NCBI GenBank assembly: GCA_047495785.1 | Contig: JBLDXI010000064.1 | Location: forward strand, 434,001-498,000 | DNA length: 64,000 nt | From: Lepidodermella squamata | Taxonomy: Eukaryota > Animalia > Gastrotricha | Direction of reading: 5' to 3' | Shown: positions 11,320-53,012 of the stretch, piece after piece | Numbering within the stretch: position 1 is the stretch's first letter | How the letters are laid out: each line of letters begins with the position of its first letter | Notes under the pieces: model-generated | The model's input: the letters and a program-made list of their open reading frames with translations, nothing else | Told to the model about the DNA's origin: nothing | The model's database searches: none | Position numbers and translations under genes: made by a program

Positions 11320-14300
11320 ATGTTAGCTTTCATTCTCCTGTGTATCCACTTGGGAACCAGCTCGGCTACAAACTGGCCGCAGCAAGCTACCAACTTGGAT
11401 GACGCCCTGAGCTTGCTTTCATATCAGGTAGATTTCTACTTCTGGCCGCTGACTGGGGTTGAAACGGGGTTTTTCTCGACATTCAGCAGCGAAATGAAAC
11501 AAGCCACCACCATCAATTCGGCCGCGGTAACGCAAGGACCTTACGCCATGGGGGCAGTAACGCTGTCTTCGCCTGGTAATGCCGCAATTCTAGCTTACGA
11601 CCTGCCTCATGCAGTACTCGATTTCACACTGACGTTCTACGTGAAAACGGATTGCAGCAAAGAAACGGGCCTCGTCTTCATGAAGAAATTCCTCTCAATT
11701 TACTGTAGCCCTTCAACGAAATCTCTGGTCGCCGTCACATGGGCTAGCTCCACTTCAGCGGGCATCACTCAAAGCAAAACGATGGCTCTCAATCAAACTT
11801 CAAAAAATGGCTTTTCGTCGCAGTGATCTACGACTCGAATCAACAGACGTTCGATTGGTTCAATGTACCCTGGGATTACACAGTCTTCAGCCGGCAAACA
11901 ATGTCCTCCGTTGTTATGGCGCCTTACACCGCATCAATTTCGATCGGAGAAGCTCAGAAGGCCGATGGCACGTCGTATTACACGACGGCTGGAAGCGACC
12001 AGTTCGACTGTATCACTTTGTACAACAAGCCGTTGGATGATAGCAACATTCTGAAAATGATGAACGCCTGCGGTTTGCCTATCGCGCCATCCAGCAAGTT
12101 GCCTGAAACATTCCGGCTGATGCCTGAAATCGACAGTTTAGCGATCCATATGCCGTTGAGAAATTTTGGGGATGCGGTTTTCCAGAAATACGGCTCTGAT
12201 ATCTATCGACAGGCTACGAGCTCAGCTACTACGGTCTCGACTGACCTATTCGGACCAAATGGCTACGGATCGATATCAGTTCAGAACGAAGGCGACAGAA
12301 GCTACAAAGTCGGAAACCTGCGAGCTAACGGGCCAGTTACTCTCGCCTTCTATTACAAAGGACCCTGCGAGCAAAACAGCGCAATTTTCGCCCTGGGTGA
12401 TGCTGGTTCCTTGTATTGCTCGCCTGGCTCCGGTCTTATCTACCAAGGAACAGCAGCAGGTGAAGCCTCGACTGCTGTGCCGTACCCTCGCCCGAATGAC
12501 TGGGTCTTCTTCGCATTTGTTTTCGGCACGAACCAGCTCGAGACCTTCTACCAGCTGCCTGAAGATGATGCCCTGCGGGTTGGCCCTACGACTAGCAAAG
12601 GTTTTGTTATTTCCACCGGCGGCTACGTGTCCATCGAAGCTTTCGGCTCAAAGGTTCATCCGAGCCATACAACGGATAGTTTAGGCTGTGCAACGCTCCA
12701 TGCAACAGCTTTGTCGCAAGTTGACCTTCGAATGTTGACGTACACGTGCGGTAAAAGACCGGCAAGGTCGGAATTCCTTCCCGATTCTTTCGACCAGCTG
12801 CCTCAGCTTGGAAACCTCGTCTATCACATGCCATTCGTTCAGAAGTCGCCGTATTCAGTTTTCGACAAATTCGGATCGACTGTGTGGTACGGCGAGGCTG
12901 AGAAACGAAACTCGACCACCTCACCGATTGGACCTTATCAAAACGGGGTTGTTACGGCAAACGGCCTTGGTCCAAAGATTTCGGGTGTAAAAAACCAGGA
13001 TTCGTTCACGTTTGTTTTCTTTTACCTCGGGCCGTGCTCTGGAACTGTAGGCATAGTCTATGCCTTACGCTATCGAATCACTTGTAAAAAAGATACTTTC
13101 ATTCTAAGTACGGCTACAAAATCATCGGATCCGGTGGAATGTGACGCTACTCGCTGGAACTTGTATGCCTTCACGTATGACGGTAATTCGACAGTGAGAG
13201 GTTTCAAATGGTCAGCTTCACCGTCGCAACCTTATCAGCTAAACGAAACAAAAGGCATGAAAATAGACACGCCAATGTTCCCTATTTACGACGATCATGA
13301 AATTGGAGATGCTGTGAAAAACGGCACGGCAAGCGCTGATGCTGATAAGAGGCGAATTTCCTGTGTCAGCTATTATTCTGGCGTGCTCAGTGTCAGTGAT
13401 TTGTTCAAATTCACCGGGGCCTGCGGGACCAAGCCATTAAGAGGGATGGAGTATTTCTCCGATGTTCTGCCCCAAAAACGTAGCCTTGTTTTTTATGCGC
13501 CATTCACTTCGAAAACTGGGCTATCACTATTCAATAAATTTGGAAATTTGATTACTCCTAAAGACCCCGGAACTGTCAAAATCGGCTCGGGAGGTCCTTA
13601 TGGTCTCGGATCGCTTGAAGGCGCCAAAGATCAAGCCGGCCCCACCCTTTCGATCATTCTCCCTGCTTCGTTCACGGTTTCCTTCTTCTTCAAATCGAGC
13701 GGTACTGGAAAACAGGGCATCTTTTTGCCTGGAAAACTGTCGATCTACTACGATTCGGAAAAGGGCATTGTTGCTAAATCGAGGGGCGATGACAAATTGT
13801 TTTCTGTCGAAAGAGCTAAGCTATCGTATGAACCCAATTCATGGCTTTTCGTGGCCTATACTTACAACTGGCCAACACGGACCCTGCGGGGTTTTTACAT
13901 GAGGGAAAGTGATGATAAAGTCAAAGATCACTTTACAACCATGAATTTGACCCTTGAAGGTTGGGAAATATTCGCCTATTTTGATGTTCGTATCGGCCTA
14001 GCTAGAGTCACAAGTCAAGAAAACTGCTACATGGATCCGGGCCAAGAACTATCGTGTATTGCTTACTATTCTACAGCTTTGACTGATGTCGAAGTCGCGA
14101 AACTTCCGTACGCTTGTGGCAAGACGTACCCGAAACCTTCGTTTCTACCAACGAATTTCGCAAAAATGCCGGAAAATCAGTCATTGATCGTCTATTTGCC
14201 TTTGACCTCCAGTTCGGAACTGTGCGCAATCGACAAGTCTGGCACTGATCTATGGGATGTTACCTTTTAGAAGTGGATCTTATTCTGCTGATAAGCAGCT

Positions 14301-16170
14301 TCTGGTCGTTAACAATCTGCCAATTCTCGAAAACTACACAATCGCGTTCTACTACAAAGGCTCTTGTTCGGGGCCATCTGGATTACTGTCTACTGAGCGA
14401 TTCACTGTAAAATGCGAAAACTCTGCCATTGCTTTTGCTGCTTGGTTAACGAGTGGGTATAACAAACTCTCGCTGCCAGTTGCCTACGACCAGCCTCGAT
14501 CTTGGCGATTCTTCGCCTACACTTTTGAGAATAAAATTTTGCGAGGCTATCGCGGAACAACAGAATCTAAAAGTTTGGTATTTGCCAATACTACTGCAGG
14601 TTTTCCAGCAGATACCAGGATTAATCTCGGCTATTTGAACCTTGAGTTGGGAACCTCCTATTCTGGGTCGGATGTAGTTCCTCTAGCTAACGGAGATGAA
14701 TTGGCCTGTGTAAGCCTTCATTCGGCTATTCTCTCAATGGACGAACTGGCTATTCTTGCTGATATCTGCAACGATACCCTACAAACCACTTCGACTTCTA
14801 CTACTACTATAACTACTACGACTACTTTTACAACAAGTACCACTGCAACGACTCCAGTATCTTCTACCACGAATTTCGGTATCACATCACCAACCAGTGC
14901 TGGAATCACTTCATCACGAATGCAAGGAACATCAACCACAATGGCGAGAGCCAAGACGCCAGAAACCTCGACCCCGAGCTTGGAACCAGAGCCAAGAAAA
15001 CGCACGGACTCGAACGGTGAGATGAAAATCGGCACGACGATATCAGCCCAGAGTATTATACCTCGCTTGGATCGCAATGGAGTCTCACCGCCCGACAAAC
15101 CATTCGACACCGTCGAAAATGTCCTGAAACGATGTGACCACTTTGACCCTACGCGATACGCCCCTCCTAAAATCAAAGGCAATGAACCTATCTACGTGAA
15201 CATAACTTTCTATGTCCCGGGTTTAAATGAGCTATCGAGTGAGGATGACACAGTTGCAGTTAGCGGGGTCGTCCTACTCTCGTGGTCTGTTTCGACGTGC
15301 CCAAAAAACTCAACCGACCCAGTCGCAAGCCGGCAGAGAGAGCAGATCCATGTTGGAAACCCGAACGAAGTCTGGCTCCCTCAGCTTCGGTTCATCAACA
15401 GCGCCCAGTCGAATGTCTACATGAAGAACGTGGCGGTTGGCGATGATTTTCTGATCACAATGGACGGAGCTGGGGCTATGGAGAGTCCGAATAAGACCTA
15501 CAACTTCTACTGGATCCGGGAGGGGTTATTCAGGGCTGATTGCACGTTGGAGATGAAAGGGTTCCCCTTCGATGAACAAACCTGTGAATTTGTGTTCGGG
15601 TTACAGCGATCGAACCTTCAGCTTTCTTTCATGGATCCGCCGACTTTCCTGTGGGACGTTGATGCTGTTGACAATTCTGAGTGGTTGCTAACAGAATTTA
15701 GTAGTCACATATCATGGGCGTATTTCAATGGGTACAACGTATCGATTGTTGTCTATGAAGTCAATTTCAAGCGATTCCCAAATTACTACATCAACAATTA
15801 CTATTTGCCGAATGCGATTCTGGCCAGTTTGGACCTGGCAGCTTTTCTGATGGCCCCAGCTATGCCAGAACGGTCTGCCTTTACTGTTACAATCCTTCTG
15901 GCAATGGCTGTTACCCAGAATGACGTCATAAGCCAGGCCCCAAATACAGATAGTACCATTTTGAGTACGTACATCCAATGGATGGCGATGTTTTCAGCTG
16001 CGGTGACGCTTTACCACTTGGTATCGCTATGGCTCGCCTGTTCGTATTTCGTGGAGGGCAAGCGTGAGATGAAATGGACGAATGAGCTTGGTTCGACTTC
16101 TCGATATACCAGCTTTTATTGCTGCTGTGGCTTTCTTCGCTTATCAAAATTATGTTTTCCTTAAAAACTG
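11320..16170 (+). pseudogene. 5xLamG-stalk-Cys-loop receptor, copy A, disrupted by three frameshifts
   Basis: Three consecutive ORFs are colinear with copies B-E. Frameshifts: the A6 run at 11802-11807, a 32-nt deletion at 14262/3 (versus copy D) and an 11-nt deletion at ~16074 (versus copy C) that puts M4 out of frame. Confidence 0.85.
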
Positions 16171-16888
16171 CAGAATTCGCACGGGCTAACACTGAATGCC
16201 AACATTTTCCTCATTCTTGTATATCCATCCTACTAAGGACTCCGTCACTCAATGTAACTCAAGTAATTTCGTTAACTTTCCTCCAGTCTCCAGTATTTTC
16301 TGATCTTTGACGGTTTCTCGAAACTCGAGATTTTGAAAATAAATTATTCGCTGTGAAAATGCGAATCTCGCATATTCTTGCTTCATTTGATAGTGGCAAC
16401 AAGCGCAAACACGTTTGCAGGCGATTCGCACACATTTCGGATGGCCGATATTTCGCTGCCAGCCAAAACAGGCCGAATCGCTGTTTTCAGCCCTTGTACG
16501 CATCGCAGCTGTGCGGAATCGTGCTGAACCCAGGCGAGAACCAGCTTTAAGGGCTCGAGTGCTTTCCAGCCGACAAGAACCCCGCAAGTAACCCTGTAGC
16601 AGCGCTCATCCGGGCTGCTCTTCCTGATGTTCTCCGCTTTACCTTATTCTTTTACTAAGTTTTACAAGCTTCATCCTTACGCTGTGAAACCTGAACGATT
16701 GGGAACGTGTTACACGTATTATTAGTATTGGGAACCTCCGGCAACTCATCCAAAAAATGTGTCATCAATGATTTGAAGGAATCCAGTGATGAGGTTTAGA
16801 ACCGGGGTAAAACATCATAATAAATAGAGTTGATTCAACCTTTTGAAGTCCTTAATGTTATTAGCGAACAGCCAATTATTGCAATTGG

Positions 16889-19800
16889 TCACATATCGTT
16901 TGGAAAAATTTCTTCGACCATGAAGTAGCTCGTCCCTCCCAGTCCAATTCCTAAGAAAAAGAAATATTTGAGGAATCCGATGGAATTGCATTCCAGCTCA
17001 CCGCTGTTGTACATCATGCCAGGGTAAGACGTCGATTTTACAGCGTATTGGATCGTGAACGTTACTGGGCCTGAAGCAACTGGCATCTTGCATATACCCT
17101 CAACTGTAATTTCATAATGATTATCGAGAATAAATGCAAAACAAATCGGATTACCATAACCCGGTCGACCGATGTGGACCCCGTGGTAGCCATCCCACAA
17201 CAGCATTGACGTTTCGATCTGTGTCGGATTATTGCACTCATTCCCGTTTATGCGAACAAACCTTAGACAAAACTGTGGACTAGGCTATTTCATAGACAGT
17301 TTTCAAGTTTACCATTTCAAGTTTTCAGAATAATACTGCCAGTAATCCAAGGTTCCGATGAACATGCCAGTGTACCATTTCACATGGATAAACGATGTGT
17401 CTTGCAGTTTTGTCCACACGAAAGTCTAGAAGAAACAATAAGAATAACCATCAGAGGGAAATTTCGTTGAAATATATATGCCTTCAGGGGTGTGTTTGCA
17501 CACGGCTGATTCGAACAGCCACTGCTGCAACTTCCAGTGTAACGACACGAGTCTTTGAAGCTGAAATACTGCCTGTTGAAGTAGGGCAGATCGGCCATGG
17601 TCCCATCCGATAGCAACAAGCCGTTCGTTGGCAGCAGCTCGTTGATTTCTTCGACGAAAATTTGAGACGGCTGGCCGTTGCCAAGGTTAACTTCGATGTA
17701 GGAAACAGCGTCAGGGCCGAAAGAAATGCAATTCTGATCGACCATTATGTTGATATCGTATTTGCCGATAGGAAGATTTCTGCACACGCCATCAACTTCA
17801 GGCGATGGAAATGAAATGTTCGGATGAAATAAGACATTGGTCGGATAAAAAAAGACATTTGTCGAATGAAAAAGCCACACCCCTGAATTCAAGGGGGAGA
17901 AGGTGCACGAGTTAACCCGGGTGATTTCACTAAAAGCTGAAAGTCCGATTTTTTTATCACTCTAATTTTCTGGTTGGTGCAACATCAATTTAATACTTTT
18001 GAATTGAACTCACGATTGAAAGTTGTCGCGCCAACCGCCATTCGCCCGGCCGAGTAGGTGGCAGACTGAGCCTGGTACAGCGTGTGCTCAATCGGAAACG
18101 GATCCGTGCATTGGCGGCCGTTGATGAGAGCGAAAAAGTGGATGCATCGCTTGTAGACGTCAAACATAACCTTGGCATGCCAGTAGATACGCAGCAGCGA
18201 AGTAGCACTCCGCTTCTTGTATTTCAGAATTTGCTAAGACAAAGGTTTCATTAAGGCAGATTGACGATTCGAGTGAGTTTGTCTTACATAAGGCAGTTGC
18301 TGTTCTCCTGTTGCATAAGGCACCGACTCTTGAAATTGCTCAGAATTGGTATTGAATACCGTTGAAGCTCGACAAATTAGGGTATCGTCTGACGGAACGA
18401 TACAAGTTAGCAAAAATATGAGCGTTCAGAATATGTATAATTCAAACCTGTTTTGAATAGGTAACTCGCAGGTATGAATTCTTCAAAGTAAACGAAGCTC
18501 GGTGCAGAATAGGGGCCCATGTTTACACCGATTCCGACGTACATGTCCTGACCCTGTTCTCGCCGCAGGTTGACGCTGTACGACCGATCACCGCGCGGCA
18601 CCTCGTTGAACGTACACAGCATTTCGCCTACATTGTAGCGTAAATTTGTGTTCTTATATATTGGTTTTGACTAACCCCCCAGGGCAACGCCAGCATCTGC
18701 GCTGTAGCCAGGATTCTTCATATCGCGACCGATGTGGTGTGTGAGGCTGAAATTTGGCGAATTTCAAAGCCGGATATATTGATAGAAAATTCATGCCCAC
18801 CCTTTCTCGCCCATGCAGAAGTTACCGTTTAGAGTCACGTCAACGTAGGCTACTTCTCTTGCGCAACAACGCTGACCCCATATGTACCTTTAAAATATCA
18901 AGGCTCAACGATTCTTTGCGAGCGATCTTAGGCACTTACCATGTGAAGCTCATTGATACCCGAACGTGCGTGAAATCGTGTAGCTTTTTCCAAGTTCCTT
19001 GCTGGTAAAATAGAGGTAAAATTCTTTTTATCATGCATATTTTGTTGAGAGATTCGACATCATTCAGCTTTCAGAAAACGCCAAAAAATATGTTCGATAA
19101 ACTTTCAAAATTGGGATGGAAGCTGAATAATATCTGATTAGCTTAATTGGTAACTAGCCAGCTGCCTTCTTCAAAATTATATCTTATTGGGCTTTGAATA
19201 TTTGGGAAAGTACTAGTAGATTCGAAATACAGGGGTGCCGGAGGTGTACTCAACCACACGAAGGGTGAAAAAACCTCTAGAGAGACCCTGTGATTTCTTC
19301 GGTTTCAAAATCCTACTTCGCAAACCGGCATTAGGCACACCACTTTCGAAGTAATTAGTTCATAATTGAGTGGATAATTTTCTGGGTCAAAATACCAACT
19401 TACTCTGAAGTTCGTTATTGTGGATCGGCTGTAATAATACAGCGCGAACTGCGTGAAATGAACCCTGCGAGGATACTCAACACAGCCGTTCTCTTCACCT
19501 TTGTAAAAATAACAAGGAAATGCATTACTTTATTAGCACAGATGATAGATTTCTTACCAGCACAATACGATTTAGTCCCATCACAGTCCTGAATGCAAAC
19601 CGGAGTGATCGCATTCAGGTCATTTGTCGTTGGGACCGGGCAGAAGTTATCGCAATCCTGCACGCCATTGCGGCGATCGGTCACGCCCTCGTCGAAATTC
19701 ATCGCCGAGATGAGAACGCCCCGCATCAGGGCAGAAACGCTGCTAGACTGCTCTGACCTGTCGAAATCTCGCGCTTGGACTTTGGTCGCTCGCATCAGTA

Positions 19801-20062
19801 TGCAGGTCCGGTTGTACGGTTCGAAGAAGGCCGTTCGACACGGTGGGTCGGCCGAGGACAGGCATCGCGTGGCACAGCTCGATTGGTCCTTAGTCGTAAG
19901 TTGAGGCTGGATGATGTAACGCCCGAGGGCAATGTCCATCATGTCCAGAGTTATGAAAGACTCCGAGGTCTGTATCATACGTGTGCATCGCCCCCGGAAT
20001 ATCAGCTCGCCTACAACGGGGCTGGTCAAAATTGCGACAAGAAAAGCTAGGTCAAAAATCAT
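16889..20062 (-). CDS. Multi-exon secreted protein: PAN/apple + three CTHRC1 C-terminal-like domains (copy 2)
   Basis: Exon-by-exon paralogue of 5558-8475 with the same intron positions; ends IGLGGTSYFMVEEIFPNDM*. Confidence 0.8.
19230..19345. mobile_element. Degenerate hAT-type MITE in an intron
   Basis: Starts CAGGGGTG and ends CACCACTT; flanks TCGAAATA / TCGAAGTA (1 mismatch); internal similarity to the 5150 element. Confidence 0.45.
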
Positions 20063-31790: not shown

Positions 31791-32075
31791 GTTACCTGAT
31801 TCCAAAGAGTAGCTGCTCTGAGATCGATCAGAAAGTCGTCCTACATTCCACAGACACGAGAAACATTTGTGAAACATTCTTTGATGAAATAGCGTTCTAA
31901 AAATGTTTCAACAAATTGAAGATTTGAGGCGAAGTTACTATTCCTAATTCCTTTGAAATCCTGAACCATATAGCGAAATTCAAGTGAAGGTGTTCTTTTT
32001 TTGAACTATCGCTCCTAATCATCCCTTAGGGACTGAACGAGCATATTTTTCTTGAAAATTAGGTGCATTCCATTA

Positions 32076-39381: not shown

Positions 39382-39726
39382 TCTGTGATCGCATTGAACA
39401 ACGTTTGCTCATGACGTAGTTGAACACCATATCTTATTCATCAAGTGCGAAACAAGTTGTGCACCGATCAGCGGGCAAAAAGCGGACTGTGTTATGTGTG
39501 TTGTTTGTTTCATTTCGAAAAATTGAACAGCTTCTCGCCCGTCGTAATTGCGAATTTTGTCCATTCCAGCGGGTTTATGTACACAAATTCAGCAATAATC
39601 CTTGTTTTTCACCGATCTTGCATCCTGTTTTCAACGCATCGCCAGTTTTAATTGAAATTTCGTGCTTATATTCGACATATTTCCACATTTTTGTCCAATA
39701 CAGCTGGACTCACAATTTCTTTCGCT

Positions 39727-42700
39727 ATGCGAACTCTCCTTTTGTTTTTACTTTTCGCTCAAAGTTGCGTAGCTCAAAGCTCGCCAATTCAAGCCACGTC
39801 TTGGGACGACGCTCTAAGCCTGCTGCCAGTTCATTCAGATTTCTACTTCTGGCGTCTAGCAAGTGGCGATAAGAGGTACTACTCGTCAGCGAGCAACTCG
39901 ATGAAAGAAGCAACTACCAGCAACTCTGCTACTATGGCTGACGGGCCTTACGGCTTAGGAGCTGTAACCGTGGAGAACACAGCGACTGGACTCGCTTTGC
40001 TCTCCTACGACGGTCTGGAAGTGCCAGTAACCGATTTCACACTCACCTTCTTCGTGAAAACAGACTGTTTAGATAAGGGCATTGTCAGCTTGAGGCCGTT
40101 CCTTTCAATGTACTGCCAAGACTCAAGTCTGGTGGCGGCTACGTGGAACTCGAATGGAGAAGGAACCACCCTCAGCGAGACGTTGCCCCTCACTACAGAG
40201 TCGCCATGGGCTTTCGTAGCCGTGACATACGATTCGACGCTACAGCAGCTGCAATGGGCGAATGTCGCTCACTATTCATCGGCCATTGAGCTAACTACGG
40301 TCACGTCGGTGCTCATGGGCCCTTCTTCGCAGACTTTTGTGATCGGCGAGGGTTTGAAAACGGACGCGGGGCAGGATTTACATACTGCGAACACGATCGA
40401 TCAATTCGCGTGCATGACTCTATACAACAAACCGTTGGAGACCGTCGAAATCTATAAAATCATGTTCGCGTGTGGTCGAGTAATTTCTCCGGCCAACGAG
40501 TTGCCTGAGGCATTCCGATTGATGCCTCAGATCGACAGTTTGGCTATCCATATGCCAATGAGAAAGGCTGAAGATAAGGTTTTCCAGAAATACGGATCGG
40601 ACTACTTTCGCCAGGCTTCGAATAGTGGGACGGCGGTTGCCAAAGATTTATTTGGACCAAACGGATTCGGATCGATTTCTGTGAAGAAAGAGGGAGATCG
40701 AATTTTCAAGGTCGAAAATCTGAGAACTAGCTGGCCTATGACCGTTTCCTTCTACTACAAAGGGCCTTGCGAACAAAGCAGCGCGATTCTGTCCTTGAAT
40801 GGCAAAGGATTCATATTTTGCAAGCCCAATTCTGGCCTGGTCTACCTAGGGCCAACTGCTACCAGTAGTGAATCGACGGATGCTGTTCCGTATTTACGCC
40901 CGAATGACTGGATCTTTGTTGCCTTTGTCTTTCGAGACGGAAGTGTTGAAACCTACTACCAACTGCCAGAGAACGATTTCATGAGTGTTGGACCGACGAC
41001 CAGCAAGGCCTTCACAGCGTTCAGTGGAAGCTATTTCTCGATCGAAGCATTCAGTGCGATGCAGGACCTGAGCCGTACAACAGATAGCCTGGCCTGTGTG
41101 ACTTTTCACAACACAGCTTTGTCGCAGGTGGACCTTCGAATGTTGACTTACACGTGCGGGAAACGACCGGCAAGGTCGGAATTCCTTCCGGATTCTTTCG
41201 ACGAGTTGCCTCAGCTTGGAAAACTCGTCTACCATATGCCATTCGTTCAGAAGTCGCCGTATTCCGTTTTCGACAAATTTGGCTCAACTGTGTGGTACGG
41301 CGATGCTGAGAAGCGATCTTCGACCACATCCCTTGGGGGACCTTTTCAAAGCGGTTATCTCATGGCTAACGGCCTTGGCCCGAAGGTATCCGGGGTCAAA
41401 CATCAGGATTCTTTCACCTTTGCTTTCTTTTACTTCGGACCGTGCGCTGAAGCTGTCGGGATTGTCTCCACCCTTCGCTATCAAATCATCTGTGAAAATG
41501 GTAAAATTATTCTTAAAGCTGGGGAGAAATCTACGGATCCGATAGCATACGACAGCTCTACATGGAACCTATTCGTTTTCACCTACTCGTCAGGAATTGT
41601 GAGAGGTTTTCGATATGCGTTTTCTCCCTCACCGCCGGTTCAGGCTTTTGAAACTAAAGGCATGAAGATAGACTCGCCAATGTTCCCAGTATACGGCAGT
41701 CATATAATCGGTGATTCTGTAACAAATGCCGCGACTATTGCTAACCCTGAGACGAGGCGAATCTCCTGCGTTAGCTATTATTCCGAAGCACTGAGTCTGA
41801 GTGATATATCGAAAATCGTCAAGGCCTGCGGGAAGAAGGAAGGAAGAGCAAAAAATCTACCGGATTTCTTCGATTATCTGCCCAAGAGACGTAGCCTGGT
41901 TTTTTATGCGCCATTCACCACGCAGTCTGGACTCTCGCTTTTCGATAAATGGGGCCAGGAAATCACCACTGCAGATCCTGGAACAGTGAAAATCGTCGCG
42001 AAAGGTCCGTATGGCCTCGGATCCCTCGGAGGTGCCAAAGATCAAGCCGGCCCTTCCCTTTCGATTATTCTACCTGCCTCGTTCACAGTTTCCTTCTACT
42101 ACAAATCGAGCGGTACGGGAAAGCAGGGAATCATTTTGCCTGGGAAATTGTCGATCTACTACGAATCAGGTCAAGGCATTGTTGTTAAATCGAGAGGTGA
42201 TAACAAATCGTTTTCCGTTGAAAGAGCTAAGCTATCGTATGAGCCCAATTCGTGGCAATTCCACGCCTATACCTACGATTGGCCAACCCGGACCCTGCGA
42301 GGTTTCTATATGAAGGAAAGTGACGATAAAGTCATCGATCACTTCACAACCGTGAATTTGACCCTTGAAGCCTCGGATATATTCGCATATTTCGATGTCA
42401 GAATTGGCATGGCTAGAACCCAAAACCAAGACACCAGCTACATGGATCCGGGCCAGGAATTATCGTGTATTGCTTACTATTCCACAGCTTTGACTGATAT
42501 CGAAGTTGGCAAACTCCCTTACGCTTGTGGCAAGCCGGAGCCGAAACCAGCGTTTCTACCGTCGAAATTCGGATCGATGCCGAAAAATCAATCTTTGGTC
42601 ACGTATTTACCTTTGACCTCGAGTTCGAAACTCAGTGCTATCGACAAGTTTGGCACTGATCTGTGGGATGTTACGCCGGGTAAACCGATAGCTACGTCAG

Positions 42701-44568
42701 CTGGTCCCTTCGGCATTGGATCTTATTCTGCCGATAAACAACTTCTGGTAGTCAATAATTTGCCAATTTTTGAAAAATACACAATCGCCTTCTACTATAA
42801 GGGATCCTGCGCCGGGCCATCTGGATTACTGTCCACGGACCGCTTTACAGTGAAATGCGATAACTCCGCCCTTACCTATGCTGGTTGGTCAATGGATGGG
42901 TATAAGAAGTTCTCGTCGCCAGTTGTCTATGACCAGCCTCAATCTTGGCGATTCTTCGCCTACACTTTCGATAACGGAACTTTGCTCGGCTACCGAGGAA
43001 CTACTGAATCTAATAGCGTGACACTGGCCAACACAACTAAAAATTTTCCGACGGAGGCGAGGTTTCATTTGGGATATTTCAAACTAGAACTGGGAACTTT
43101 CTATTATGGGGCGACTACCCCTCTAGCCAGTGGGGATGAGCTGGCTTGTGTCAGCCTTCATTCAGCTGTTCTTTCGATGGATGAATTGGCTGTTCTGGCT
43201 GATATTTGCAACGACATGCCACCAAGTTCTTCGACTTCGACTACTTCAAGTACAACCACAACATCACTTCCTGCTACAACTACTACTGTAACTAATGCAA
43301 GAATGATGTATTCGACTACGTATTTCCGGCCCATCTCTCCAGCTCCGGCTTCAATCGTGGAGCTAGAGCCAAGCCATCGAAAAACAAAAGATTCAGATGA
43401 CGTGTCGAAGATTGGAACGACTGTGTCTGCTCAGAGCTTGCTTCCCCGGATGGATGGCGATAACGTCAAACCACCTTACACGCCTTTCGAAACAATCGAA
43501 AATGTCTTGAAAAACTGCGACCATTTCGAAGCGTCGCGATACGCCCCTCCGAATATCGACGAATCCCAACCGCTTCGGGTCAACATAACCTTCTATGTGC
43601 CAGGTTTGAATGAGCTATCGAGTGCGGATGACACAATTTCAGTTAGCGGAGTCGTTCTCTTATCTTGGTCAGTTTTGACTTGCCCAAAGAACTCTTCTGA
43701 CCCGGTCGCAACTCGGCCTAAAGAGCAGATCTACGTGGCTAGCCCTAACCAAATCTGGCTTCCCCAGCTCCGTTTTATCAACAGCGCCGAATCGAATGTC
43801 TACATGAAGGACGTTGCAGTAGGCGATGATTTCCTAGTCACAACGGATGGGGATGGGGCTATGGAGAGCCCGAATAAGACTTACAACTTCTACTGGACTC
43901 GTGAGGGCCTATTCAAAGCAGACTGCGCCTTAATGATGGAAAATTTCCCGTTCGACCAACAGACATGCACCTTCATTTTCGGCCTTCAACGATCGAACAA
44001 GCTAGTTTCGTTCCAAGACCCGCCAACGTTCTTGTGGGACATAGACGCCGTTGATAACTCTGAGTGGTTGGTAAAAGATTTTCACAGTTATCTATCTTGG
44101 GCTTACTTCAACGGGTACAACGTATCGACTGTTGTCTATGAAGTGACGTTAAAGCGATACCCAACTTACTACCTGACCAATTTGTACCTGCCAACAGCGA
44201 TTTTGGGCAGTCTAGACGTGGCAGCTTTTCTGATGGCTCCATCGATGCCCGAGCGGTCGGCGTTCACGGTGACTATCCTGCTGGCGATGGCTGTTACACA
44301 AACCGAGATCATCAGCGAGGCTCCGAATACGGATAGAACTGTTTTAAGTTCGTACATCCAATTGATGGCTTGGTTCTCGGCCGGAGTCACCATTTACAAC
44401 CTACTGACGCTTTGGCTGGCCTGTTCCTATTTCGTCGAGGGCAAGCGCGATATGAGAATGAGATGCAAAGGTCGCATCAGCCTGGTTCGACTTTTAGATT
44501 TACCAGCTTTCATCGTAGCAGTTGTTTGTTTTGCGCTTGCTAACTACTACATCCTCAAAAAATTGTAA
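39727..44568 (+). CDS. Giant Cys-loop receptor subunit, copy D (~1613 aa)
   Basis: Same architecture; ATG at 39727 starts the signal peptide MRTLLLFLLFAQSCVA; Cys-loop CALMMENFPFDQQTC. Confidence 0.92.
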   Translation: MRTLLLFLLFAQSCVAQSSPIQATSWDDALSLLPVHSDFYFWRLASGDKRYYSSASNSMKEATTSNSATMADGPYGLGAVTVENTATGLALLSYDGLEVPVTDFTLTFFVKTDCLDKGIVSLRPFLSMYCQDSSLVAATWNSNGEGTTLSETLPLTTESPWAFVAVTYDSTLQQLQWANVAHYSSAIELTTVTSVLMGPSSQTFVIGEGLKTDAGQDLHTANTIDQFACMTLYNKPLETVEIYKIMFACGRVISPANELPEAFRLMPQIDSLAIHMPMRKAEDKVFQKYGSDYFRQASNSGTAVAKDLFGPNGFGSISVKKEGDRIFKVENLRTSWPMTVSFYYKGPCEQSSAILSLNGKGFIFCKPNSGLVYLGPTATSSESTDAVPYLRPNDWIFVAFVFRDGSVETYYQLPENDFMSVGPTTSKAFTAFSGSYFSIEAFSAMQDLSRTTDSLACVTFHNTALSQVDLRMLTYTCGKRPARSEFLPDSFDELPQLGKLVYHMPFVQKSPYSVFDKFGSTVWYGDAEKRSSTTSLGGPFQSGYLMANGLGPKVSGVKHQDSFTFAFFYFGPCAEAVGIVSTLRYQIICENGKIILKAGEKSTDPIAYDSSTWNLFVFTYSSGIVRGFRYAFSPSPPVQAFETKGMKIDSPMFPVYGSHIIGDSVTNAATIANPETRRISCVSYYSEALSLSDISKIVKACGKKEGRAKNLPDFFDYLPKRRSLVFYAPFTTQSGLSLFDKWGQEITTADPGTVKIVAKGPYGLGSLGGAKDQAGPSLSIILPASFTVSFYYKSSGTGKQGIILPGKLSIYYESGQGIVVKSRGDNKSFSVERAKLSYEPNSWQFHAYTYDWPTRTLRGFYMKESDDKVIDHFTTVNLTLEASDIFAYFDVRIGMARTQNQDTSYMDPGQELSCIAYYSTALTDIEVGKLPYACGKPEPKPAFLPSKFGSMPKNQSLVTYLPLTSSSKLSAIDKFGTDLWDVTPGKPIATSAGPFGIGSYSADKQLLVVNNLPIFEKYTIAFYYKGSCAGPSGLLSTDRFTVKCDNSALTYAGWSMDGYKKFSSPVVYDQPQSWRFFAYTFDNGTLLGYRGTTESNSVTLANTTKNFPTEARFHLGYFKLELGTFYYGATTPLASGDELACVSLHSAVLSMDELAVLADICNDMPPSSSTSTTSSTTTTSLPATTTTVTNARMMYSTTYFRPISPAPASIVELEPSHRKTKDSDDVSKIGTTVSAQSLLPRMDGDNVKPPYTPFETIENVLKNCDHFEASRYAPPNIDESQPLRVNITFYVPGLNELSSADDTISVSGVVLLSWSVLTCPKNSSDPVATRPKEQIYVASPNQIWLPQLRFINSAESNVYMKDVAVGDDFLVTTDGDGAMESPNKTYNFYWTREGLFKADCALMMENFPFDQQTCTFIFGLQRSNKLVSFQDPPTFLWDIDAVDNSEWLVKDFHSYLSWAYFNGYNVSTVVYEVTLKRYPTYYLTNLYLPTAILGSLDVAAFLMAPSMPERSAFTVTILLAMAVTQTEIISEAPNTDRTVLSSYIQLMAWFSAGVTIYNLLTLWLACSYFVEGKRDMRMRCKGRISLVRLLDLPAFIVAVVCFALANYYILKKL

Positions 44569-44840: not shown

Positions 44841-45624
44841 TCAAAATGGCTCGAGATATCCTCGAGATATTCTTACTTCTCGGCGCTTTAACAGTCCAAG
44901 GTAGCTTTGAAGTCGATATGTTATTGGCAGTGGAAGACCTCGCCTATTTGGAGCTTCACAAGGCGGACTTTGAGCAGCTGGCAGCCTGCAACATCTCATC
45001 TTCACGTAGTTGAGCCCGGTATCATCACCTAGAAAATATTCAATGCCCAATAATCGAATTCGAAGTTCACTTACTCAACCCCTGGAATTCCTCGACGCGA
45101 GTCTGAAGGCCGCACAGAGCGTGGCGAGGGGAGCATCTGAGCATTTTCGACCACTGGCCAAACGGCCCAGTTCCAGGCGCTTCGATCTGCTTGCCATCAT
45201 CACACAACAGCCGCACGCCATTCGCAGCCGTGTCATCGCCCGCCCACTGGCGAGGTTCGGTTTTCAGCGCGAAGCCCACTGCCCAGCCGTCGCAGAGTAC
45301 GTCGCCATGCCACACGCCGAACTGGCCAACACTGGACATGATTTCGTGCCAGTTTGAAGAACACTCCCAGCCGCGTCTCCGGCTGCTGCAGTGCAGCATC
45401 ACGCCATTCATCGCTGTGTCGTCGCTTTGAAAGTCGTAAGGTTCCACCTTTTGGCTGTAGCCGACGACGTAAGTGCCTGGGCGGCAGAACTCCCATTCGC
45501 CAGTGCTGCCCCACGGCGTAACCGAAGGAGGCCTCAGCTCAAATGGACTAATATCAGTACGACAGTTGGCAACATCAGATCCTATTAGTATGAGAACTGA
45601 GGTAATCAAATTCGGCTTCATCAT
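44841..45624 (-). CDS. VMO1: Vitelline membrane outer layer protein 1-like (beta-prism I), 2 exons
   Basis: Three repeats ending DDTAMNGV, DDTAANGV and DDTGLNYV, with WG-x-x-G-x-W, GF-x-LK-x-E and CGLQTRVE motifs; GT-AG intron at ~45030-45074. Confidence 0.88.
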
Positions 45625-46780: not shown

Positions 46781-47925
46781 ATGGATCTATTCCGAGTACT
46801 TTTCTACACTGCCATCGCAGCTTCCTATGTCGATGCTTGCTGGAATAAGAAGGAAAAGGTAGTTATAGCTGAACTTTTTTGATGACATGAATTTTACTAG
46901 ATTCCAAGGACTGCAATCACCACGAAAACGGTTTGGTGAGATCAAATTACCTGGGCGATAATTTTGACGAAGAAATAGTGACTTGCACTATCGATAACTT
47001 GGCCAAATCCAAGTTACTCAGAGTCGGCTACATGCACGGCCGAGCATCATGGCACAAATGCCTGGCCAGGGGCGGATCGGCAGATTACACGCTGATGTAC
47101 TCGACCGTATGCTTCGCCGGCAGCGACGAAGGCAGGGCGAAACTCGCGAAACTGCTCATCGACCACGGCGCTGATCCAAACGCCGGTCTTGCGTGGTCCA
47201 GAGAGTGCCGCTGCGACCAAACCGTACGAACTACGCCACTGATAGCCGCGGCTAAGAATAACCACGCGCAAGTCGCAAACGTTTTGCTGGAAAACGGGGC
47301 GGATCCTAACTTAGCTGAAGCAATCGGCAATTTCCCACTCACATACGCTGTGAGACTTCAGCATTACGAAACAGCTGAGATTCTGCTGAAAAACGGAGCT
47401 GATCCGAATAAGCTGCCTGATATGACGGAGTACGATGCTTTGACTGATCGCTATAACTTGCGGGATTTTACTAAATTCACCCAGCCGTTGCTGCATTTTG
47501 CTGTTAACAATTCTGATAAAGCTATGGTTGAGCTGCTTCTAAAACACGGGGCTGATGTGAATGGCTACGATGACGATGAGTTCACGCCGTTGATGCTCGC
47601 GGCCTACAACAACAACCAAGCTATGGCGAAAATTTTAATGAAACACGGGGCTGATCTCTTTAAAACTGATCAAGAGGGTCTGGGCCCATTTGAAATTGCT
47701 GCGAGGCGGGAGCATAGGCCGTTGTTGAGGTACCTGCTCGACGAATGCTGTCTGGCTATTGTTGAGCGGAAGATCAAGCCGCGGCGGAAGTTTAATGTTG
47801 TAGGCGTTAAATATAGGGCGGCTGCGATTTCGTCGCATACTTCGGCCAATGTGTGCTTCGGGTTGATTTTGGAGGGTTACGAGTTCTTGCCGCCGGGTTG
47901 CGTTACCCCAACATGGTTTGATTGA
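46781..47925 (+). CDS. Ankyrin-repeat protein (~5-6 repeats), 5' exon structure uncertain
   Basis: TPLIAAAKNN..., FPLTYAV..., PLLHFAV... and TPLMLAAYNN... in ORF 46933-47925. A candidate first exon 46781-46858 (MDLFRVLFYTAIAASYVDAC...) ends at AAG|GT. Confidence 0.8.
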
Positions 47926-48077: not shown

Positions 48078-51000
48078 TTATATGTTTTTAAGAACAATAT
48101 AGTTGAAGTACGCAAAGAAGGCTGTTGTGATGATGAAAGCTGGGACATCCAGCAGTCTAACCAAACTGATTGTTCCTTTACACAGCATTTTCATGCCCCG
48201 CTTCCCCTCTACAAAGAAGGAACACGCCAGCCAAAGAGACAGCAAGTTGTAGATTGTGACTCCAGCCGAGAACCAAGCCATCCATTGAATGTAAGAACTC
48301 AAAATTGTGCTATCCGAATTCGGAGCCTGGCTTATGATCTCAGTTTGGCTAACAGCCATCGCCAAAAGGATAGTCACTGTAAAGGCAGCCCGCTCTGGCA
48401 TAGCCGGAGCCATCAAAAAAGCAGCCAGGTCCAAACTGCCCAGAATTGCAGTGGGTAAGTACAAATTGTTGATGTAGTAGGACGGGTATCTTTTGAAAGT
48501 AACTTCATAGACAACAATTGATACGTTATAACCATTGAAAAAAGCCCACGATAGATAACCCCTAAAATCGGTCACCAGCCACTCGGAATTATCAACGGCA
48601 TCAATATCCCACAGAAATGTAGGTGAGTCAAGAAAAGAAACCAGAAGATTCGATCGCTGAAGACCGAAAACAAACGCGCAGGATTGTTTATCGAAAGGGA
48701 ACTCCTTCATGCCCAGCGTGCAATCAGCTTTGAATAGGCCCTCTCGGGTCCAATAGAAGTTGTAAGTCTTATTCGGGCTCACTTTAGCACCAACTCCGTC
48801 CATAGTGACCAGAAAATCATCGCCAATCGCGACGTTTTTCATGTAAACATTTGACTGGGCACTGTTGATGAAGCGAAGCTGGGGGAGCCAGATTTGATCT
48901 GGATGTGCCACATAGATTTGTTCCTTAGGTCTCGTTGCAATCGGGTCTGTTGAATTTTTCGGGCAAGTTGCAACCGACCATGATAAAAGAACGACCCCGC
49001 TAACAGATATCGTGTCATCCGCACTCGAAAGCTCATTCAAACCTGGCACATAGAAGGTTATGTTGACTCGAAGTGGTTGGGATTCGTCGATATTTGGAGG
49101 GGCGTAACGCGATGCCTCAAAGTGGTCACATCGTTTCAGAACATCTTCGATTGTGTCGAAAGGTGTGTAAGGCGGTTTTAGCCCATTCGCATCTAATTGG
49201 GGCAGGAGACTCTGAGCCGATATATTCGTCCCAATCCTCGATTCTCCATTTGAGGCTTCTATTTTTCTGAAAGTCGGCTCTTGAACCAGGTTTGAAACTG
49301 GGGCTTTTGATGTGAGCCCAGAATTCGTGGTTTGTCGCTCAGTTGCTGTATTGGTTTTGGTAGTTATGGTGGTCGGCTCTTGAACCAGGTTCGAAACAGG
49401 ACCTTGTGATGTGAGCTCAAAGTTAGTGGTTGGTCTGGCAGTTGTCGTGGTGGTTGTGGTAGCTGTTGAACTTGTTGAAGTCGAAGTGGTAGGCAGCTGG
49501 TTGCCGCAGATACCAGCCAAAATAACCAATTCATCTGCCGATAACGCAGTTGAATGAAGGCTGACACAAGCCAATTCATCGTTCCTGGCCAATGGTACCA
49601 CAGTCGAGCCAGAATAGTACATTCCTAACTCAAGGTTCATATATCCTAGATGGAACCTAAACTCGGTCGAAAAATCAGTAGTCGTATTGGCCAGCGCCAC
49701 GCTGTTCCATTCATTTTTCCCTCGGTAGCCTAGCAAGGTCCCACTTTCATAGGTGTAGGCGAAGAATCGCCAGGATTGCGGCTGGTCGTAGGCAACTGGC
49801 AGCGATAATTTCTTGTAACCATCCATGAGCCAGCCAGCAAAGGAAAGGGCAGAGTTTTCGCATTTTACTGTAAAATGCTCAGTGGACAGTATTCCAGATG
49901 GTCCGGAGCAAGAGCCCTTGTAGTAGAAAGCGATTGTGTATTCTTTGAAAACTGGCAAATTATTGACGACCAGAAGTTGTTTATCAGAAGCAGAATAAGA
50001 TCCAAAGCTATAGGGTCCACCTTTTTTCGCACTGGGCATCCCGAGCGTAACATCGAATATATCAGAGCCAAACTTGTCTATGACGTTCAGCTTTGAATTC
50101 ATAGTTAAGGGCAAATATGCGATCAAATATTCATTTTTCGGCATTGCTTCGAAATTCGCCGGAACAAATGAAGGTTTTGGGTACGGCTTGCCACAACCGT
50201 ATGGAAGCTTTGCGACTTCAACATCAGCCAAAGCTGTCGAGTAGTAAGTAACACACGACAATTCCTGGCCTGGATACATGGTGTAAGTATCCACATCCAA
50301 AACCCTAGCTAGGCCGATTCGAACTCGGAAATAGTCGAATATTTCTGTAGCTTCGAGGGTCAAATTTACGGTTGTGAAGTTGTACATTACTTTCGAATCA
50401 CTTTCCCGCATAACGAAACCTTTCAGGGTCCGGGTTGGCCAATCGTAAGTATAGGCCACGAATTGCCACGTATTGGCCTCATATGCGAGTTTGGCTCTTT
50501 CAATAGATATCCATTTGTCATCACCCCTTGATTTGGCAACAATGCCGCGAATCGTATCGTGGTAGATTGACAATTTTCCAGGCAGAAAGATGCCTTGTTT
50601 ATCAGTACCAGTCGATTTATGGTAGAACGAAACAGTGAACGATGCAGGTTGAATGATCGAAAGGCATGGACCAGATTGGCCGGATTCTCCTTCTAGCGAC
50701 CCAAGACCAAAGGGGCCACGAGGGACGATTTTGGCTGTTCCAGGGTCTGTGGGAGTAATCACCTCGCCAAATTTATCGAAAAGCGATAGCTCAGTTTGCG
50801 TTGTGAATGGAGCGTAGAAAACAAGGCTACGTCTCTGCGGCAGATAATCGAAGAAATCCGGTAGATTTTGCGATCTTCCTTGCTTCTTACCACAGCCCTT
50901 GAAGATTTTCGATATATCGCTAAGACTCAGTGCTTCGGAATAATAGCTAACACAGGCGATCCACTTTGCCTCCGGGTTTAGTACGGCCTCATTCGGCATA

Positions 51001-53012
51001 GCATCCCCGATTTGAGGATCATCATAAACTGGGAAGATAGGTGATACCAAAGCCATGTCTTTCATTTCGGGTGCTTGAACTGGCTCTGATGCAGATGCGG
51101 CGTATTTGAAGCCTCTTACAATGAATTCATCAGCCGATGCATTGCTTGAATATGTAAATGCGTACAGGTTCCATTGGTTGTTGTCGTATATCACTGGATA
51201 CGACTTGCCGTTTCCTCGAAGTATCATATTACCATTTTGACAGGTGATTTGATAGCGAAGAGTATAGACAATCCCGACAGTTTCTGCACAAGGTCCCAAG
51301 TACATGAAAGCGAAAGTGAATGAATCCTGGTTCTTGACCCCCGAAATCCGAGGACCAAGACCGTTCGCCATTAGGAAACTGATTTGAAAAGGCCCACCCA
51401 GTGACGTGGTCGAATTTCGCTTTTGTGCCTCGCCGTACCACAAGGTCGACCCGAATTTGTCGAAAACTGAATACGGCGACTTCTGAACGAATGGCAGGTG
51501 ATAGACGAGTTTTCCAAGCTGAGGCAACGCGTCGAAAGTATCCGGTAGGAATTCCGACCTTGCCGGTCTCTTCCCGCACGTGTACGTCAGCATTCGAAGG
51601 TCAACTTGCGACAAAGCTGCATTGTGAACAGTGGCACAGGCCAAGCTATCCGATGTGCGGCTTGGGTCCTCCAGGCCGCTGAATGCTTCGATCGAGAAAT
51701 AGCCTCCACTGAATGCTGTGAAGACCTTGCTAGTAGCCGGTCCAACACTCATGAAATCGTTCTCGGGCAGTTGGTAGTAGGTCTCAACAATGCCGTCGCG
51801 AAAGACAAATGCAAAAAAGATCCAGTCATTCGGACGTAGATACGGAACAGCATTTGTCGATTCATTACCGAGAGCAGTCGGCTCATTGTAGACCAGCCCG
51901 GAATTAGGCTCGCACAAAATGAACCCCTCGCCATTCAATGAGAAAATTGCGCTGTTTTGTTTGCAAGGTCCTCTATAGTAGAAGGATATAGTCATCGACC
52001 AGCTGGTTCTTAGATTTTCGACTTTGTAGATCCGATCGCCGTCCTTCTGCACAGAAATCGATCCGAAGCCGTTCGGCCCGAACAAATCTTTGGCAACCGC
52101 TGTTCCGCTATGCGAAGCCAGGCGAAGGTAGTCGGAGCAGTATTTCTGGAAAACCTTATCTCCAACACTCCTCATCGGCATATGGATAGCTAAACTGTCG
52201 ATTCGAGGCATCAGGCGGAATGTTTCAGGCAGCTCGCTGGATGGTGTAATTTCTAGGCCGCATGCGTACATGATTCTCTGAATGTCCGGAGTTTTCAACG
52301 GTTTTGTGTACAAAGTCATGCAAGCGAACTGATCTACCCCGGCTGTTGTGTAAAACGCAGTTCTGTCAGTTAGGGCCTTGCCTATTGACATTGATGTAGC
52401 GTAAGGGCTTATTAAAACTGGGGTAGACATCGTTGTTAGTGCGAAGTTCGCGCCATTGCTAGCTACGTTGAGCCAGCTCAACTTTTGAAGCCCTGCGTCG
52501 TAGGTAACAGCGACGAAAGTCCAAGGAGTGTAGTTTATGTGGACGGGTAATTTTTCGCTTTGGTTGACTACCCCGGCTGTAGCGCTCCACGTTACGGCAA
52601 CTAGCTTTTTAGTGACTGCTTCACAGTAGATCGAGAAGAAGAAGTCGAAATGGACGAGGCCTGTATCCTTGGTGCAATTCATTTTCACGTAGAACGTCAG
52701 CGTGAAATTGACAATTTTAACAGGCAGGTCATAGGTTAGTATCGGGTCGGTAGTCGAGCCAGGCGACAGAGTGACTGCTCCCATGGCGTGAGGCCCCGGC
52801 GCCACTTCCATTGATTTGACGTCAGCAGCTGGTTTCATATCGTTGGTCGATTTCGAGAAGAACCGCGTTTCCCCTTTGTCCAGCGGCCAGTAGAAGAAGT
52901 CTGTCTGACTTGGCAACAGGCTGAGTACGTCATCAAATGTCTTGGCTTGCGTCGGCCAATTTGCAGCTGAGCTATACTGCGCAAGTTGCAGCAAAATCAG
53001 CCAAAACATCAT
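48078..53012 (-). CDS. Giant Cys-loop receptor subunit, copy E (1644 aa), inverted relative to A-D
   Basis: Same architecture; Cys-loop CTLGMKEFPFDKQSC; M2 PERAAFTVTILLAMAV. Confidence 0.92.
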   Translation of the reverse strand: MMFWLILLQLAQYSSAANWPTQAKTFDDVLSLLPSQTDFFYWPLDKGETRFFSKSTNDMKPAADVKSMEVAPGPHAMGAVTLSPGSTTDPILTYDLPVKIVNFTLTFYVKMNCTKDTGLVHFDFFFSIYCEAVTKKLVAVTWSATAGVVNQSEKLPVHINYTPWTFVAVTYDAGLQKLSWLNVASNGANFALTTMSTPVLISPYATSMSIGKALTDRTAFYTTAGVDQFACMTLYTKPLKTPDIQRIMYACGLEITPSSELPETFRLMPRIDSLAIHMPMRSVGDKVFQKYCSDYLRLASHSGTAVAKDLFGPNGFGSISVQKDGDRIYKVENLRTSWSMTISFYYRGPCKQNSAIFSLNGEGFILCEPNSGLVYNEPTALGNESTNAVPYLRPNDWIFFAFVFRDGIVETYYQLPENDFMSVGPATSKVFTAFSGGYFSIEAFSGLEDPSRTSDSLACATVHNAALSQVDLRMLTYTCGKRPARSEFLPDTFDALPQLGKLVYHLPFVQKSPYSVFDKFGSTLWYGEAQKRNSTTSLGGPFQISFLMANGLGPRISGVKNQDSFTFAFMYLGPCAETVGIVYTLRYQITCQNGNMILRGNGKSYPVIYDNNQWNLYAFTYSSNASADEFIVRGFKYAASASEPVQAPEMKDMALVSPIFPVYDDPQIGDAMPNEAVLNPEAKWIACVSYYSEALSLSDISKIFKGCGKKQGRSQNLPDFFDYLPQRRSLVFYAPFTTQTELSLFDKFGEVITPTDPGTAKIVPRGPFGLGSLEGESGQSGPCLSIIQPASFTVSFYHKSTGTDKQGIFLPGKLSIYHDTIRGIVAKSRGDDKWISIERAKLAYEANTWQFVAYTYDWPTRTLKGFVMRESDSKVMYNFTTVNLTLEATEIFDYFRVRIGLARVLDVDTYTMYPGQELSCVTYYSTALADVEVAKLPYGCGKPYPKPSFVPANFEAMPKNEYLIAYLPLTMNSKLNVIDKFGSDIFDVTLGMPSAKKGGPYSFGSYSASDKQLLVVNNLPVFKEYTIAFYYKGSCSGPSGILSTEHFTVKCENSALSFAGWLMDGYKKLSLPVAYDQPQSWRFFAYTYESGTLLGYRGKNEWNSVALANTTTDFSTEFRFHLGYMNLELGMYYSGSTVVPLARNDELACVSLHSTALSADELVILAGICGNQLPTTSTSTSSTATTTTTTTARPTTNFELTSQGPVSNLVQEPTTITTKTNTATERQTTNSGLTSKAPVSNLVQEPTFRKIEASNGESRIGTNISAQSLLPQLDANGLKPPYTPFDTIEDVLKRCDHFEASRYAPPNIDESQPLRVNITFYVPGLNELSSADDTISVSGVVLLSWSVATCPKNSTDPIATRPKEQIYVAHPDQIWLPQLRFINSAQSNVYMKNVAIGDDFLVTMDGVGAKVSPNKTYNFYWTREGLFKADCTLGMKEFPFDKQSCAFVFGLQRSNLLVSFLDSPTFLWDIDAVDNSEWLVTDFRGYLSWAFFNGYNVSIVVYEVTFKRYPSYYINNLYLPTAILGSLDLAAFLMAPAMPERAAFTVTILLAMAVSQTEIISQAPNSDSTILSSYIQWMAWFSAGVTIYNLLSLWLACSFFVEGKRGMKMLCKGTISLVRLLDVPAFIITTAFFAYFNYIVLKNI

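Follow-up and report, generated by a model that had tools for sequence, protein, structure and literature searches.

A tandem gene family encoding predicted Cys-loop receptor subunits with five Laminin_G_3-like repeats on a mucin-like stalk in Lepidodermella squamata

A 64,000-nucleotide stretch of the genome of the gastrotrich Lepidodermella squamata (assembly GCA_047495785.1, contig JBLDXI010000064.1, positions 434,001–498,000; the whole stretch is called the window below, and coordinates are counted from its first letter) carries a tandem gene family whose predicted products join a head of five lectin-fold repeats to a pentameric ligand-gated ion channel (pLGIC) subunit. The family consists of four uninterrupted open reading frames (ORFs) of 1595–1654 codons, copies B, C, D and E, and a fifth, broken copy A. 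All copies have the same layout: a signal peptide is followed by five repeats of ~225–235 aa (R1–R5), a Ser/Thr-rich stalk and a complete Cys-loop subunit. Judged from their sequences, the products are type-I-like subunits encoded by real protein-coding genes under selection. The chance that one frame of 1650 codons stays open at the window's G+C content of 45% is ~5e-41.

Gene copies and their channel module

Copy B (25954–30918, + strand) encodes 1654 aa and is defined by its ORF, a match to Pfam Neur_chan_LBD and five matches to a hidden Markov model (HMM) of the repeat. Copy C (ORF 32052–36863, first ATG at 32076, + strand) and copy D (ORF 39652–44568, first ATG at 39727, + strand) encode 1595 and 1613 aa, respectively, from the first ATG; copy E (48078–53012, − strand) encodes 1644 aa, is inverted and has the most divergent R1. 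These three intact copies were identified by ORF, tblastn and repeat HMM, copy E also by Pfam Laminin_G_3, and in tblastn copy B matches each of them end to end with 61–67% identity.

Copy A (11320 to approximately 16189, + strand) retains the R1–R5, stalk and channel layout in its frame translations. A tblastn search with copy B recovered it as three pieces (11320–11790, 11808–14264 and 14263–16071) with 46–69% identity, and frameshifts lie near 11790–11826, 14257–14270 and ~16070, the last of which puts the fourth transmembrane helix (M4) in another frame. Contigs built separately by Logan from sequencing run X1 (k-mer depth ~50x), whose sample is probably the one behind the genome assembly, cover the stretch 11250–16250 and span all three frameshift sites without a gap; copy A is therefore a true pseudogene in the X1 sample. 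A preliminary description of this locus had counted five single-exon paralogues, which is correct for the uninterrupted ORFs of copies B–E but not for copy A with its three frameshifts. The N-termini of all five copies, judged by eye, have a hydrophobic segment resembling a signal peptide with small residues at −3 and −1.

The same description called the genes intronless. This holds for the coding sequence but not beyond it, where unpaired splice acceptors lie 3–23 nt upstream of each ATG. A pyrimidine-rich AG acceptor without an upstream donor is present 13–23 nt before the ATG of the intact copies B, C, D and E (positions 25941, 32063, 39704 and 53030) and 3 nt before that of copy A (11317), with the sequence AAATTAG in B and C; another is found at 45641, at the gene for a vitelline membrane outer layer protein I (VOMI). 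These acceptors would fit spliced-leader trans-splicing. Each intact copy has a poly(A) signal, AATAAA or ATTAAA, 47–280 nt past the stop codon.

The last ~365 aa of the proteins match Pfam Neur_chan_LBD (PF02931; E = 1e-9 for copy E and 4e-6 for copy B). Against the PDB, the channel part matched nicotinic acetylcholine receptor (nAChR) chains with 2e-14 as a single sequence and 7.7e-28 as a family profile, and Alpo4 (8bx5) was among the matches. In copy B, the extracellular domain (ECD) spans 29824–30507 (+ strand) and includes the Cys-loop, C-x13-C with FPFD, that gives the superfamily its name. C152, C166, P160 and D162 are invariant in the family alignment and align to the Torpedo Cys128–Cys142 loop. 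The WxP motif, the pre-M1 Arg, the M1 Pro and the M2–M3 Pro are also present. The transmembrane domain (TMD) with M1–M4 follows at 30508–30915 (+ strand). Its M1–M3 align to the Torpedo alpha and beta chains and to human alpha7, and M4 comes after an M3–M4 loop of ~15 residues. M2 has −1′ Glu, 0′ Arg and 9′ Leu in the family alignment, a cation-type filter preceded by Pro. The claim that a full pLGIC subunit lies on the same ORF as the head is thus borne out, with ECD, Cys-loop and M1–M4 all in place.

The aromatic box of the acetylcholine site is absent: the loop B Trp is replaced by Gln, the loop D Trp (W55) by Val and the loop A Tyr (Y93) by Ile. In loop C the two Tyr are Phe and Val, and the loop, which keeps one aromatic residue, is 2–3 residues shorter and has no vicinal Cys. 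The channel module therefore lacks what marks a functional nAChR, namely the aromatic box, the vicinal Cys and a long M3–M4 intracellular domain, and has what marks a member of the Cys-loop/pLGIC superfamily, namely the LBD match, the Cys-loop with FPFD and four transmembrane helices with a pore-lining M2. We read it as a gating-competent-looking orphan of the cationic, nAChR-like branch. The ECD also contains an extra Cys pair that is invariant in the LamG-headed clade described below, C16 in the N-terminal helix 'CDHF' and C71 in the 'TCP' strand (aa 1306 and 1361 of copy B). The pair is missing from the canonical nAChR chains in the alignment and probably forms an additional disulfide.

Head repeats, stalk and selection

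The head of copy B (26029–29469, + strand) consists of R1 (26029–26721), R2 (26722–27411), R3 (27412–28095), R4 (28096–28794) and R5 (28795–29469). A recurring motif cuts each head into five units 224–235 aa apart, which are 18–30% identical within one protein in MAFFT alignments. The unit has a signature of the Laminin_G_3 type: GPxGxG, a hydrophobic FTxxFYYK strand, WxFxAxTY and a C-terminal helix region 'aCvxxYSxaL' ending in CG. BLASTP comparison of the proteins with themselves (threshold 1e-3) gave no repeat signal, and the repeats were defined instead by motif spacing, MAFFT, HMM and off-diagonal tblastn matches. Because the off-diagonal matches between repeats reach E values of 1e-15 to 1e-45 (24–31% identity) and the HMM detects five units, no more and no fewer, in each intact copy and none elsewhere in the window, the homology of the units is statistically clear.

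Pfam Laminin_G_3 (PF13385) matched R1 of copy E at 2e-9 and 10 of 28 repeats when these were scanned singly (best 5.7e-8). A profile of the 28 repeats matched a LamG_3-type S-layer domain in the PDB (4qvs, 1.2e-4) over positions 26–218, nearly full length, and the CBM40 module of NanA at 6e-3. An AlphaFold2 model of R5 computed from the repeat alignment (predicted local distance difference test, pLDDT, 88; predicted template modelling score, pTM, 0.89) is an all-beta sandwich with a C-terminal helix; a single-sequence AlphaFold model of R2–R3 was discarded (pLDDT 34). In an exhaustive comparison of the R5 model with the PDB (VIA-align), the best match was domain 4 of AbnA (5hon, Z = 19.3), followed by the lectin-like HCN subdomain of clostridial neurotoxins and NTNH (Z ~18), CBM40 sialic-acid modules and PTX3 (Z 14–15; PTX3 14.7), other pentraxins (13) and the neurexin LNS domain (11.4). 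Foldseek gave a probability of 1.0 for concanavalin A (ConA)-like folds, and the closest ESM-Atlas clusters are LamG_3 families (TM-score 0.72–0.78). The model and the profile matches indicate that the repeats are Laminin_G_3/ConA-like two-sheet jelly rolls. The closest structural neighbors of the model, AbnA domain 4 and CBM40, are carbohydrate-binding modules. In neurexin, laminin and agrin, LamG domains act in the matrix or in adhesion.

The preliminary description had spoken of LamG/pentraxin-like modules and had named the lack of a ConA/LamG fold as what would count against it; Pfam, the PDB profile and the AlphaFold2 model all support that fold. The pentraxin half of the label applies to the fold alone. 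The pentaxin family PF00354 gave no match at E ≤ 1 for the window proteins or at E ≤ 0.1 for single repeats, and membership of the repeats in that family was rejected, the likeness being at the level of the fold (Z 13–15).

A stalk of 72–124 aa follows R5. It starts with poly-Thr/Ser runs, contains 36–40% Ser+Thr and differs in length in every copy. That of copy B (29452–29823, + strand) is 124 aa long with 40% Ser+Thr. This composition supports the reading of a mucin-like stalk between head and channel, which is probably O-glycosylated. A short conserved linker with a basic patch joins the stalk to the ECD (e.g., 'PRKRT' in copy A and 'LKRKD' in copy C). The patch is non-canonical as a furin motif in most copies and might be a proprotein-convertase-type site that releases the head.

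Selection was assessed as the ratio of nonsynonymous to synonymous substitution rates (dN/dS), calculated by the Nei–Gojobori method pairwise among the four intact copies, where dS is saturated (0.7–2.5). By domain, dN/dS is 0.05–0.08 for the ECD, 0.07–0.18 for the TMD, 0.11–0.31 for the repeats, with R1 highest, and 0.19–0.37 for the stalk. All domains are well below 1, and therefore head, stalk and channel have been retained as one frame under purifying selection since the duplications. Since every domain is under purifying selection, these are real genes. Among the copies the ECD is 81–90% identical, and R1 is the least conserved part apart from the stalk and the signal peptide; R1 of copy E is only 36–47% identical to that of the other copies. 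Sliding-window identity is a mosaic in which B and C, and D and E, are closest through R2–R4, but B and D are closest in R1. This suggests gene conversion or recombination together with fastest change at the distal tip. Fast distal repeats, R1 most of all, on a slow ECD would fit paralogues that share one gating core and differ in what their heads bind.

Relatives, origin of the head and neighboring genes

When the channel part was searched exhaustively with HMMER against 1.84 billion cluster representatives, no protein exceeded 39% identity, so the window proteins and close orthologues are absent from public protein sets. The best matches, at 27–39% identity, are ENA metagenome proteins (here P0001 to P0013). 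Several of these have head repeats N-terminal to the channel: one in P0002 (HMM E = 8e-22), two in P0008 and P0012, and three in P0013 (Pfam LamG_3, 6e-16). They differ in this from the window copies, which have five. P0007 and P0011 have heads that are weakly similar to the repeats, an EGF-like segment is present in P0003, and comparison with the repeat profile detected no similarity in the N-terminal extension of P0005, so that not all extensions in the clade are LamG-like. P0001, P0002, P0008, P0012 and P0013 share with the window copies the channel clade, the head repeat family, a Thr/Ser stalk and a short M3–M4 loop.

P0001 appears to have no head, yet the adjoining upstream ORF in both contigs that carry it (L004 and L005) encodes a head repeat (E = 6e-23). 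These ORFs are in different frames and were split by the metagenome gene caller; a 56-nt phase-1 intron (GTAAGT...CTAAC...TTTCAG) at the head/stalk boundary (L004, 9994–10049) joins them in frame. The same junction is present in L005, from a separately assembled sample; the window copies have no intron at this boundary. A canonical intron that links the two P0001 ORFs exactly in frame is an independent line of evidence for head and channel being parts of one gene. A phase-1 boundary between head and stalk is the pattern that would be expected for exon shuffling of an extracellular module. A bacterial origin of the metagenome relatives was considered and rejected, as their contigs carry the intron, a reverse transcriptase of a long interspersed nuclear element (LINE), and ankyrin, Sushi and trypsin genes.

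Maximum-likelihood analysis of 95 channel domains recovered the four window copies as a monophyletic group (Shimodaira–Hasegawa-like approximate likelihood ratio test, SH-aLRT, 100), placed with P0001 and P0002 (SH-aLRT 93; the tree tool did not star this branch). A 26-member clade (SH-aLRT 98) holds the window copies and all other LamG-headed receptors, and several of its seemingly plain members are truncated gene calls. In the tree of the repeats, R1 to R5 each form their own clade across the paralogues (99–100), and the three repeats of P0013 cluster together (97). The five-repeat head therefore predates the local gene duplications, and repeat number grew independently in different lineages. 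L004 also has two ORFs, 5197–6801 (−) and 4172–5047 (−), divergently oriented next to a head-channel gene, that carry three LamG repeats of the head type; the 4 kb that remain downstream contain no channel domain. The repeat module thus occurs outside channels as well and could have been a donor for the fusion.

Other searches added no further relatives. Scans of JGI metagenomes, run with one protein and with six aligned sequences, yielded none, and a full-length word-index search and a channel search among long proteins gave no matches, a result that is uninformative as P0008, P0012 and P0013 were missed as well. Sources were looked up for 30 of the 150 closest channel relatives, and none of these proteins was identified as crustacean. 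Ten long named proteins of these 150 were scanned and had no lectin domains; they are nAChR-like models, ordinary or tandem-fused, from bivalves and a hemichordate. The named proteins in this set also include a bivalve and a flatworm nAChR-like model outside the scanned ten.

The cluster is flanked by ankyrin-repeat genes whose coding sequence is free of introns (2796–3980, +, and 46933–47925, +), and an ankyrin gene also adjoins the three-repeat relative on contig L001 (95–2005). ORFs with PAN/apple domains lie on the opposite strand on each side of copy A (7957–8475 and 19415–20062, both −). The VOMI gene is a single ORF between copies D and E (45067–45624, −), and its nearest public homologues are vertebrate proteins with only 37–39% identity. 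A Ty1/copia-type retroelement (56325–60435, −) has two overlapping ORFs and a G+C content of 51–56%, above that of its surroundings; the ORF of 564 aa was assigned by eye to gag, protease and integrase, and the nearest Atlas clusters of the other (847 aa) carry RVT_2.

Possible function and comparison with known systems

The reading that we favor, with a probability of about 0.45, is that the head binds glycans or matrix multivalently and thereby positions, clusters or feeds an orphan cation channel whose gating would go through its own ECD. The subunits would form pentamers, and up to 25 lectin-fold modules would be held tens of nanometres above the membrane on flexible stalks. As such a stalk would uncouple the head mechanically from the ECD, multivalent binding is the likeliest role for the head; its targets would be surface glycans or matrix, for instance those of cuticle, mucus, extracellular matrix or microbes. 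Binding would position, cluster or locally feed the channel, and the pore would be opened via the conserved ECD by a small ligand or ion, resulting in cation flux. The gating hardware is conserved (the Cys-loop FPFD, the pre-M1 Arg, −1′ Glu and 9′ Leu in M2, and the M2–M3 Pro), and there is almost no intracellular domain.

Several points weigh against this reading. Fold similarity identifies no ligand, LamG_3 being a generic fold. Of the domains anticipated in the preliminary description, five Laminin_G_3, Neur_chan_LBD and Neur_chan_memb, the LBD and the LamG_3 fold were found, but Neur_chan_memb stays below the Pfam threshold in the window copies; it is found in relatives, and the TMD of the window copies is recognized by alignment only. 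Four sequences are too few to reveal positive selection at putative binding sites. Only one sequencing run holds the locus; it is not recorded as RNA and is probably the genome's own sample. The absence of the locus from any RNA run, together with the three frameshifts of copy A, would also be expected if the genes were non-functional, either unexpressed decaying duplicates or an assembly artefact. We consider this highly improbable: four ORFs of ~5 kb are intact at 61–67% amino acid identity, with saturated dS and dN/dS well below 1 everywhere, the X1 contigs reproduce the copy A stretch (11250–16250) without a gap, and the architecture is conserved in relatives.

The other readings differ in what the head does to the pore. 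Engagement of the 25 modules by a multivalent glycan or microbial surface could open it directly, by clustering the five stalks or pulling on them, so that a single protein would turn pattern recognition into depolarization; the preliminary description favored a role of this kind, with surface, glycan or microbe contact, or tether tension, coupled to ion flux. An ECD without a neurotransmitter-type pocket makes the head the natural candidate for the sensor, diversification is faster in the heads than in the core, and the same idea has been put forward for lobster channels with pentaxin or lectin domains (PMC8221624). The Ser/Thr-rich stalk, however, with its variable length of 72–124 aa, argues against a conformational relay of the type of the bacterial channel DeCLIC, though it is compatible with anchoring, ligand capture or tension; the ECD is the most conserved part (dN/dS ~0.06), as expected if it still binds something itself; and direct gating is without an experimentally tested precedent. 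We regard it as unlikely, and somewhat more so in the specific form in which engagement of the 25-module LamG head itself opens the cation pore and the paralogues are tuned to different surfaces via their distal repeats. A head anchored to matrix or cuticle might instead make the protein a tethered mechanosensor, in which displacement pulls on stalk and ECD to gate the pore. Adhesive-type LamG modules on an extended mucin rod would make a long extracellular tether for this, but the M3–M4 loop of ~15 aa leaves almost no intracellular domain as a cytoskeletal counter-anchor, and we know of no force-gated pLGIC; this reading is improbable. So, to the same degree, is one in which conduction is vestigial and the pLGIC core acts chiefly as a pentamerizing anchor in the membrane, on which lectins are arrayed for adhesion or pattern recognition. 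Pentameric display of ConA folds recalls the pentraxins (PTX3 and SAP folds, Z 13–15), and the orthosteric pocket is degenerate, but the pore and gating residues are kept throughout the clade (9′ Leu, −1′ Glu, 0′ Arg, FPFD, pre-M1 Arg and M2–M3 Pro), and the dN/dS of the TMD (0.07–0.18) fits a working channel. If lectin gating were true, it would give the Cys-loop superfamily a new mode of gating, and the receptor would convert pattern recognition directly into an electrical signal. As the genes are full-length, intronless in their coding sequence and defined to the base, they can be directly synthesized and tested.

Among known channels, DeCLIC resembles the window family in having extra beta-rich jelly-roll lobes N-terminal to the ECD of a pentameric channel (PMC9897478). 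DeCLIC is bacterial, belongs to the Pro-loop channels and has its two lobes packed onto the ECD with no stalk between (PMC9897478), whereas the proteins described here are eukaryotic Cys-loop channels with five LamG_3 domains and a flexible stalk of 72–124 aa before the ECD. N-terminal accessory domains on pentameric channels have been stated to be confined to prokaryotes (PMC9897478); the present family, a eukaryotic clade under selection with one to five lectin-fold modules on a mucin stalk, contradicts this. The eukaryotic context is evident from the spliceosomal intron in a relative and from the LINE and copia elements.

Cephalopod chemotactile receptors and other orphan nAChR-like receptors such as Alpo4 are clustered and lineage-specific, have lost the acetylcholine aromatic box and are used, or have been proposed, for environmental sensing. 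In contrast to the window family, they are of ordinary size and have the ECD directly after the signal peptide; they are not known to include any with a lectin-fold head at the N-terminus or a mucin stalk.

The closest precedent comes from the lobster genome, for which 66 gene models that add C-type lectin, pentaxin or LDLa domains to a Cys-loop channel have been listed, and in which lectin/pentaxin-LGICs (ligand-gated ion channels) are proposed to couple recognition with ion flux (Polinski et al, 2021; PMC8221624). The caution in the preliminary description that pentraxin/lectin-pLGIC fusions may exist in invertebrate gene models was therefore well placed: the class had been described once, at the level of annotation (PMC8221624), but never characterized. 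In a literature search we found no description that combines a pLGIC with Laminin_G_3, and the lobster paper was the sole description of such fusions. The lobster chimeras likewise join a Cys-loop subunit to extracellular recognition domains, including a ConA-clan fold, and form a large, lineage-specific, uncharacterized expansion (PMC8221624); they differ from the window family, which has five Laminin_G_3 domains and a mucin stalk and gives no CLECT, pentaxin (PF00354) or LDLa match. The LamG_3-channel family may be a fusion independent of the lobster chimeras. Taken with the lobster models (PMC8221624), it suggests that animals have repeatedly fused recognition domains to pLGICs as a means of sensing surfaces instead of transmitters. 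The lectin-LGIC architecture as a class is not wholly new; the form with five LamG_3 repeats and a mucin stalk is a new version within it, with the largest such head found in this analysis.

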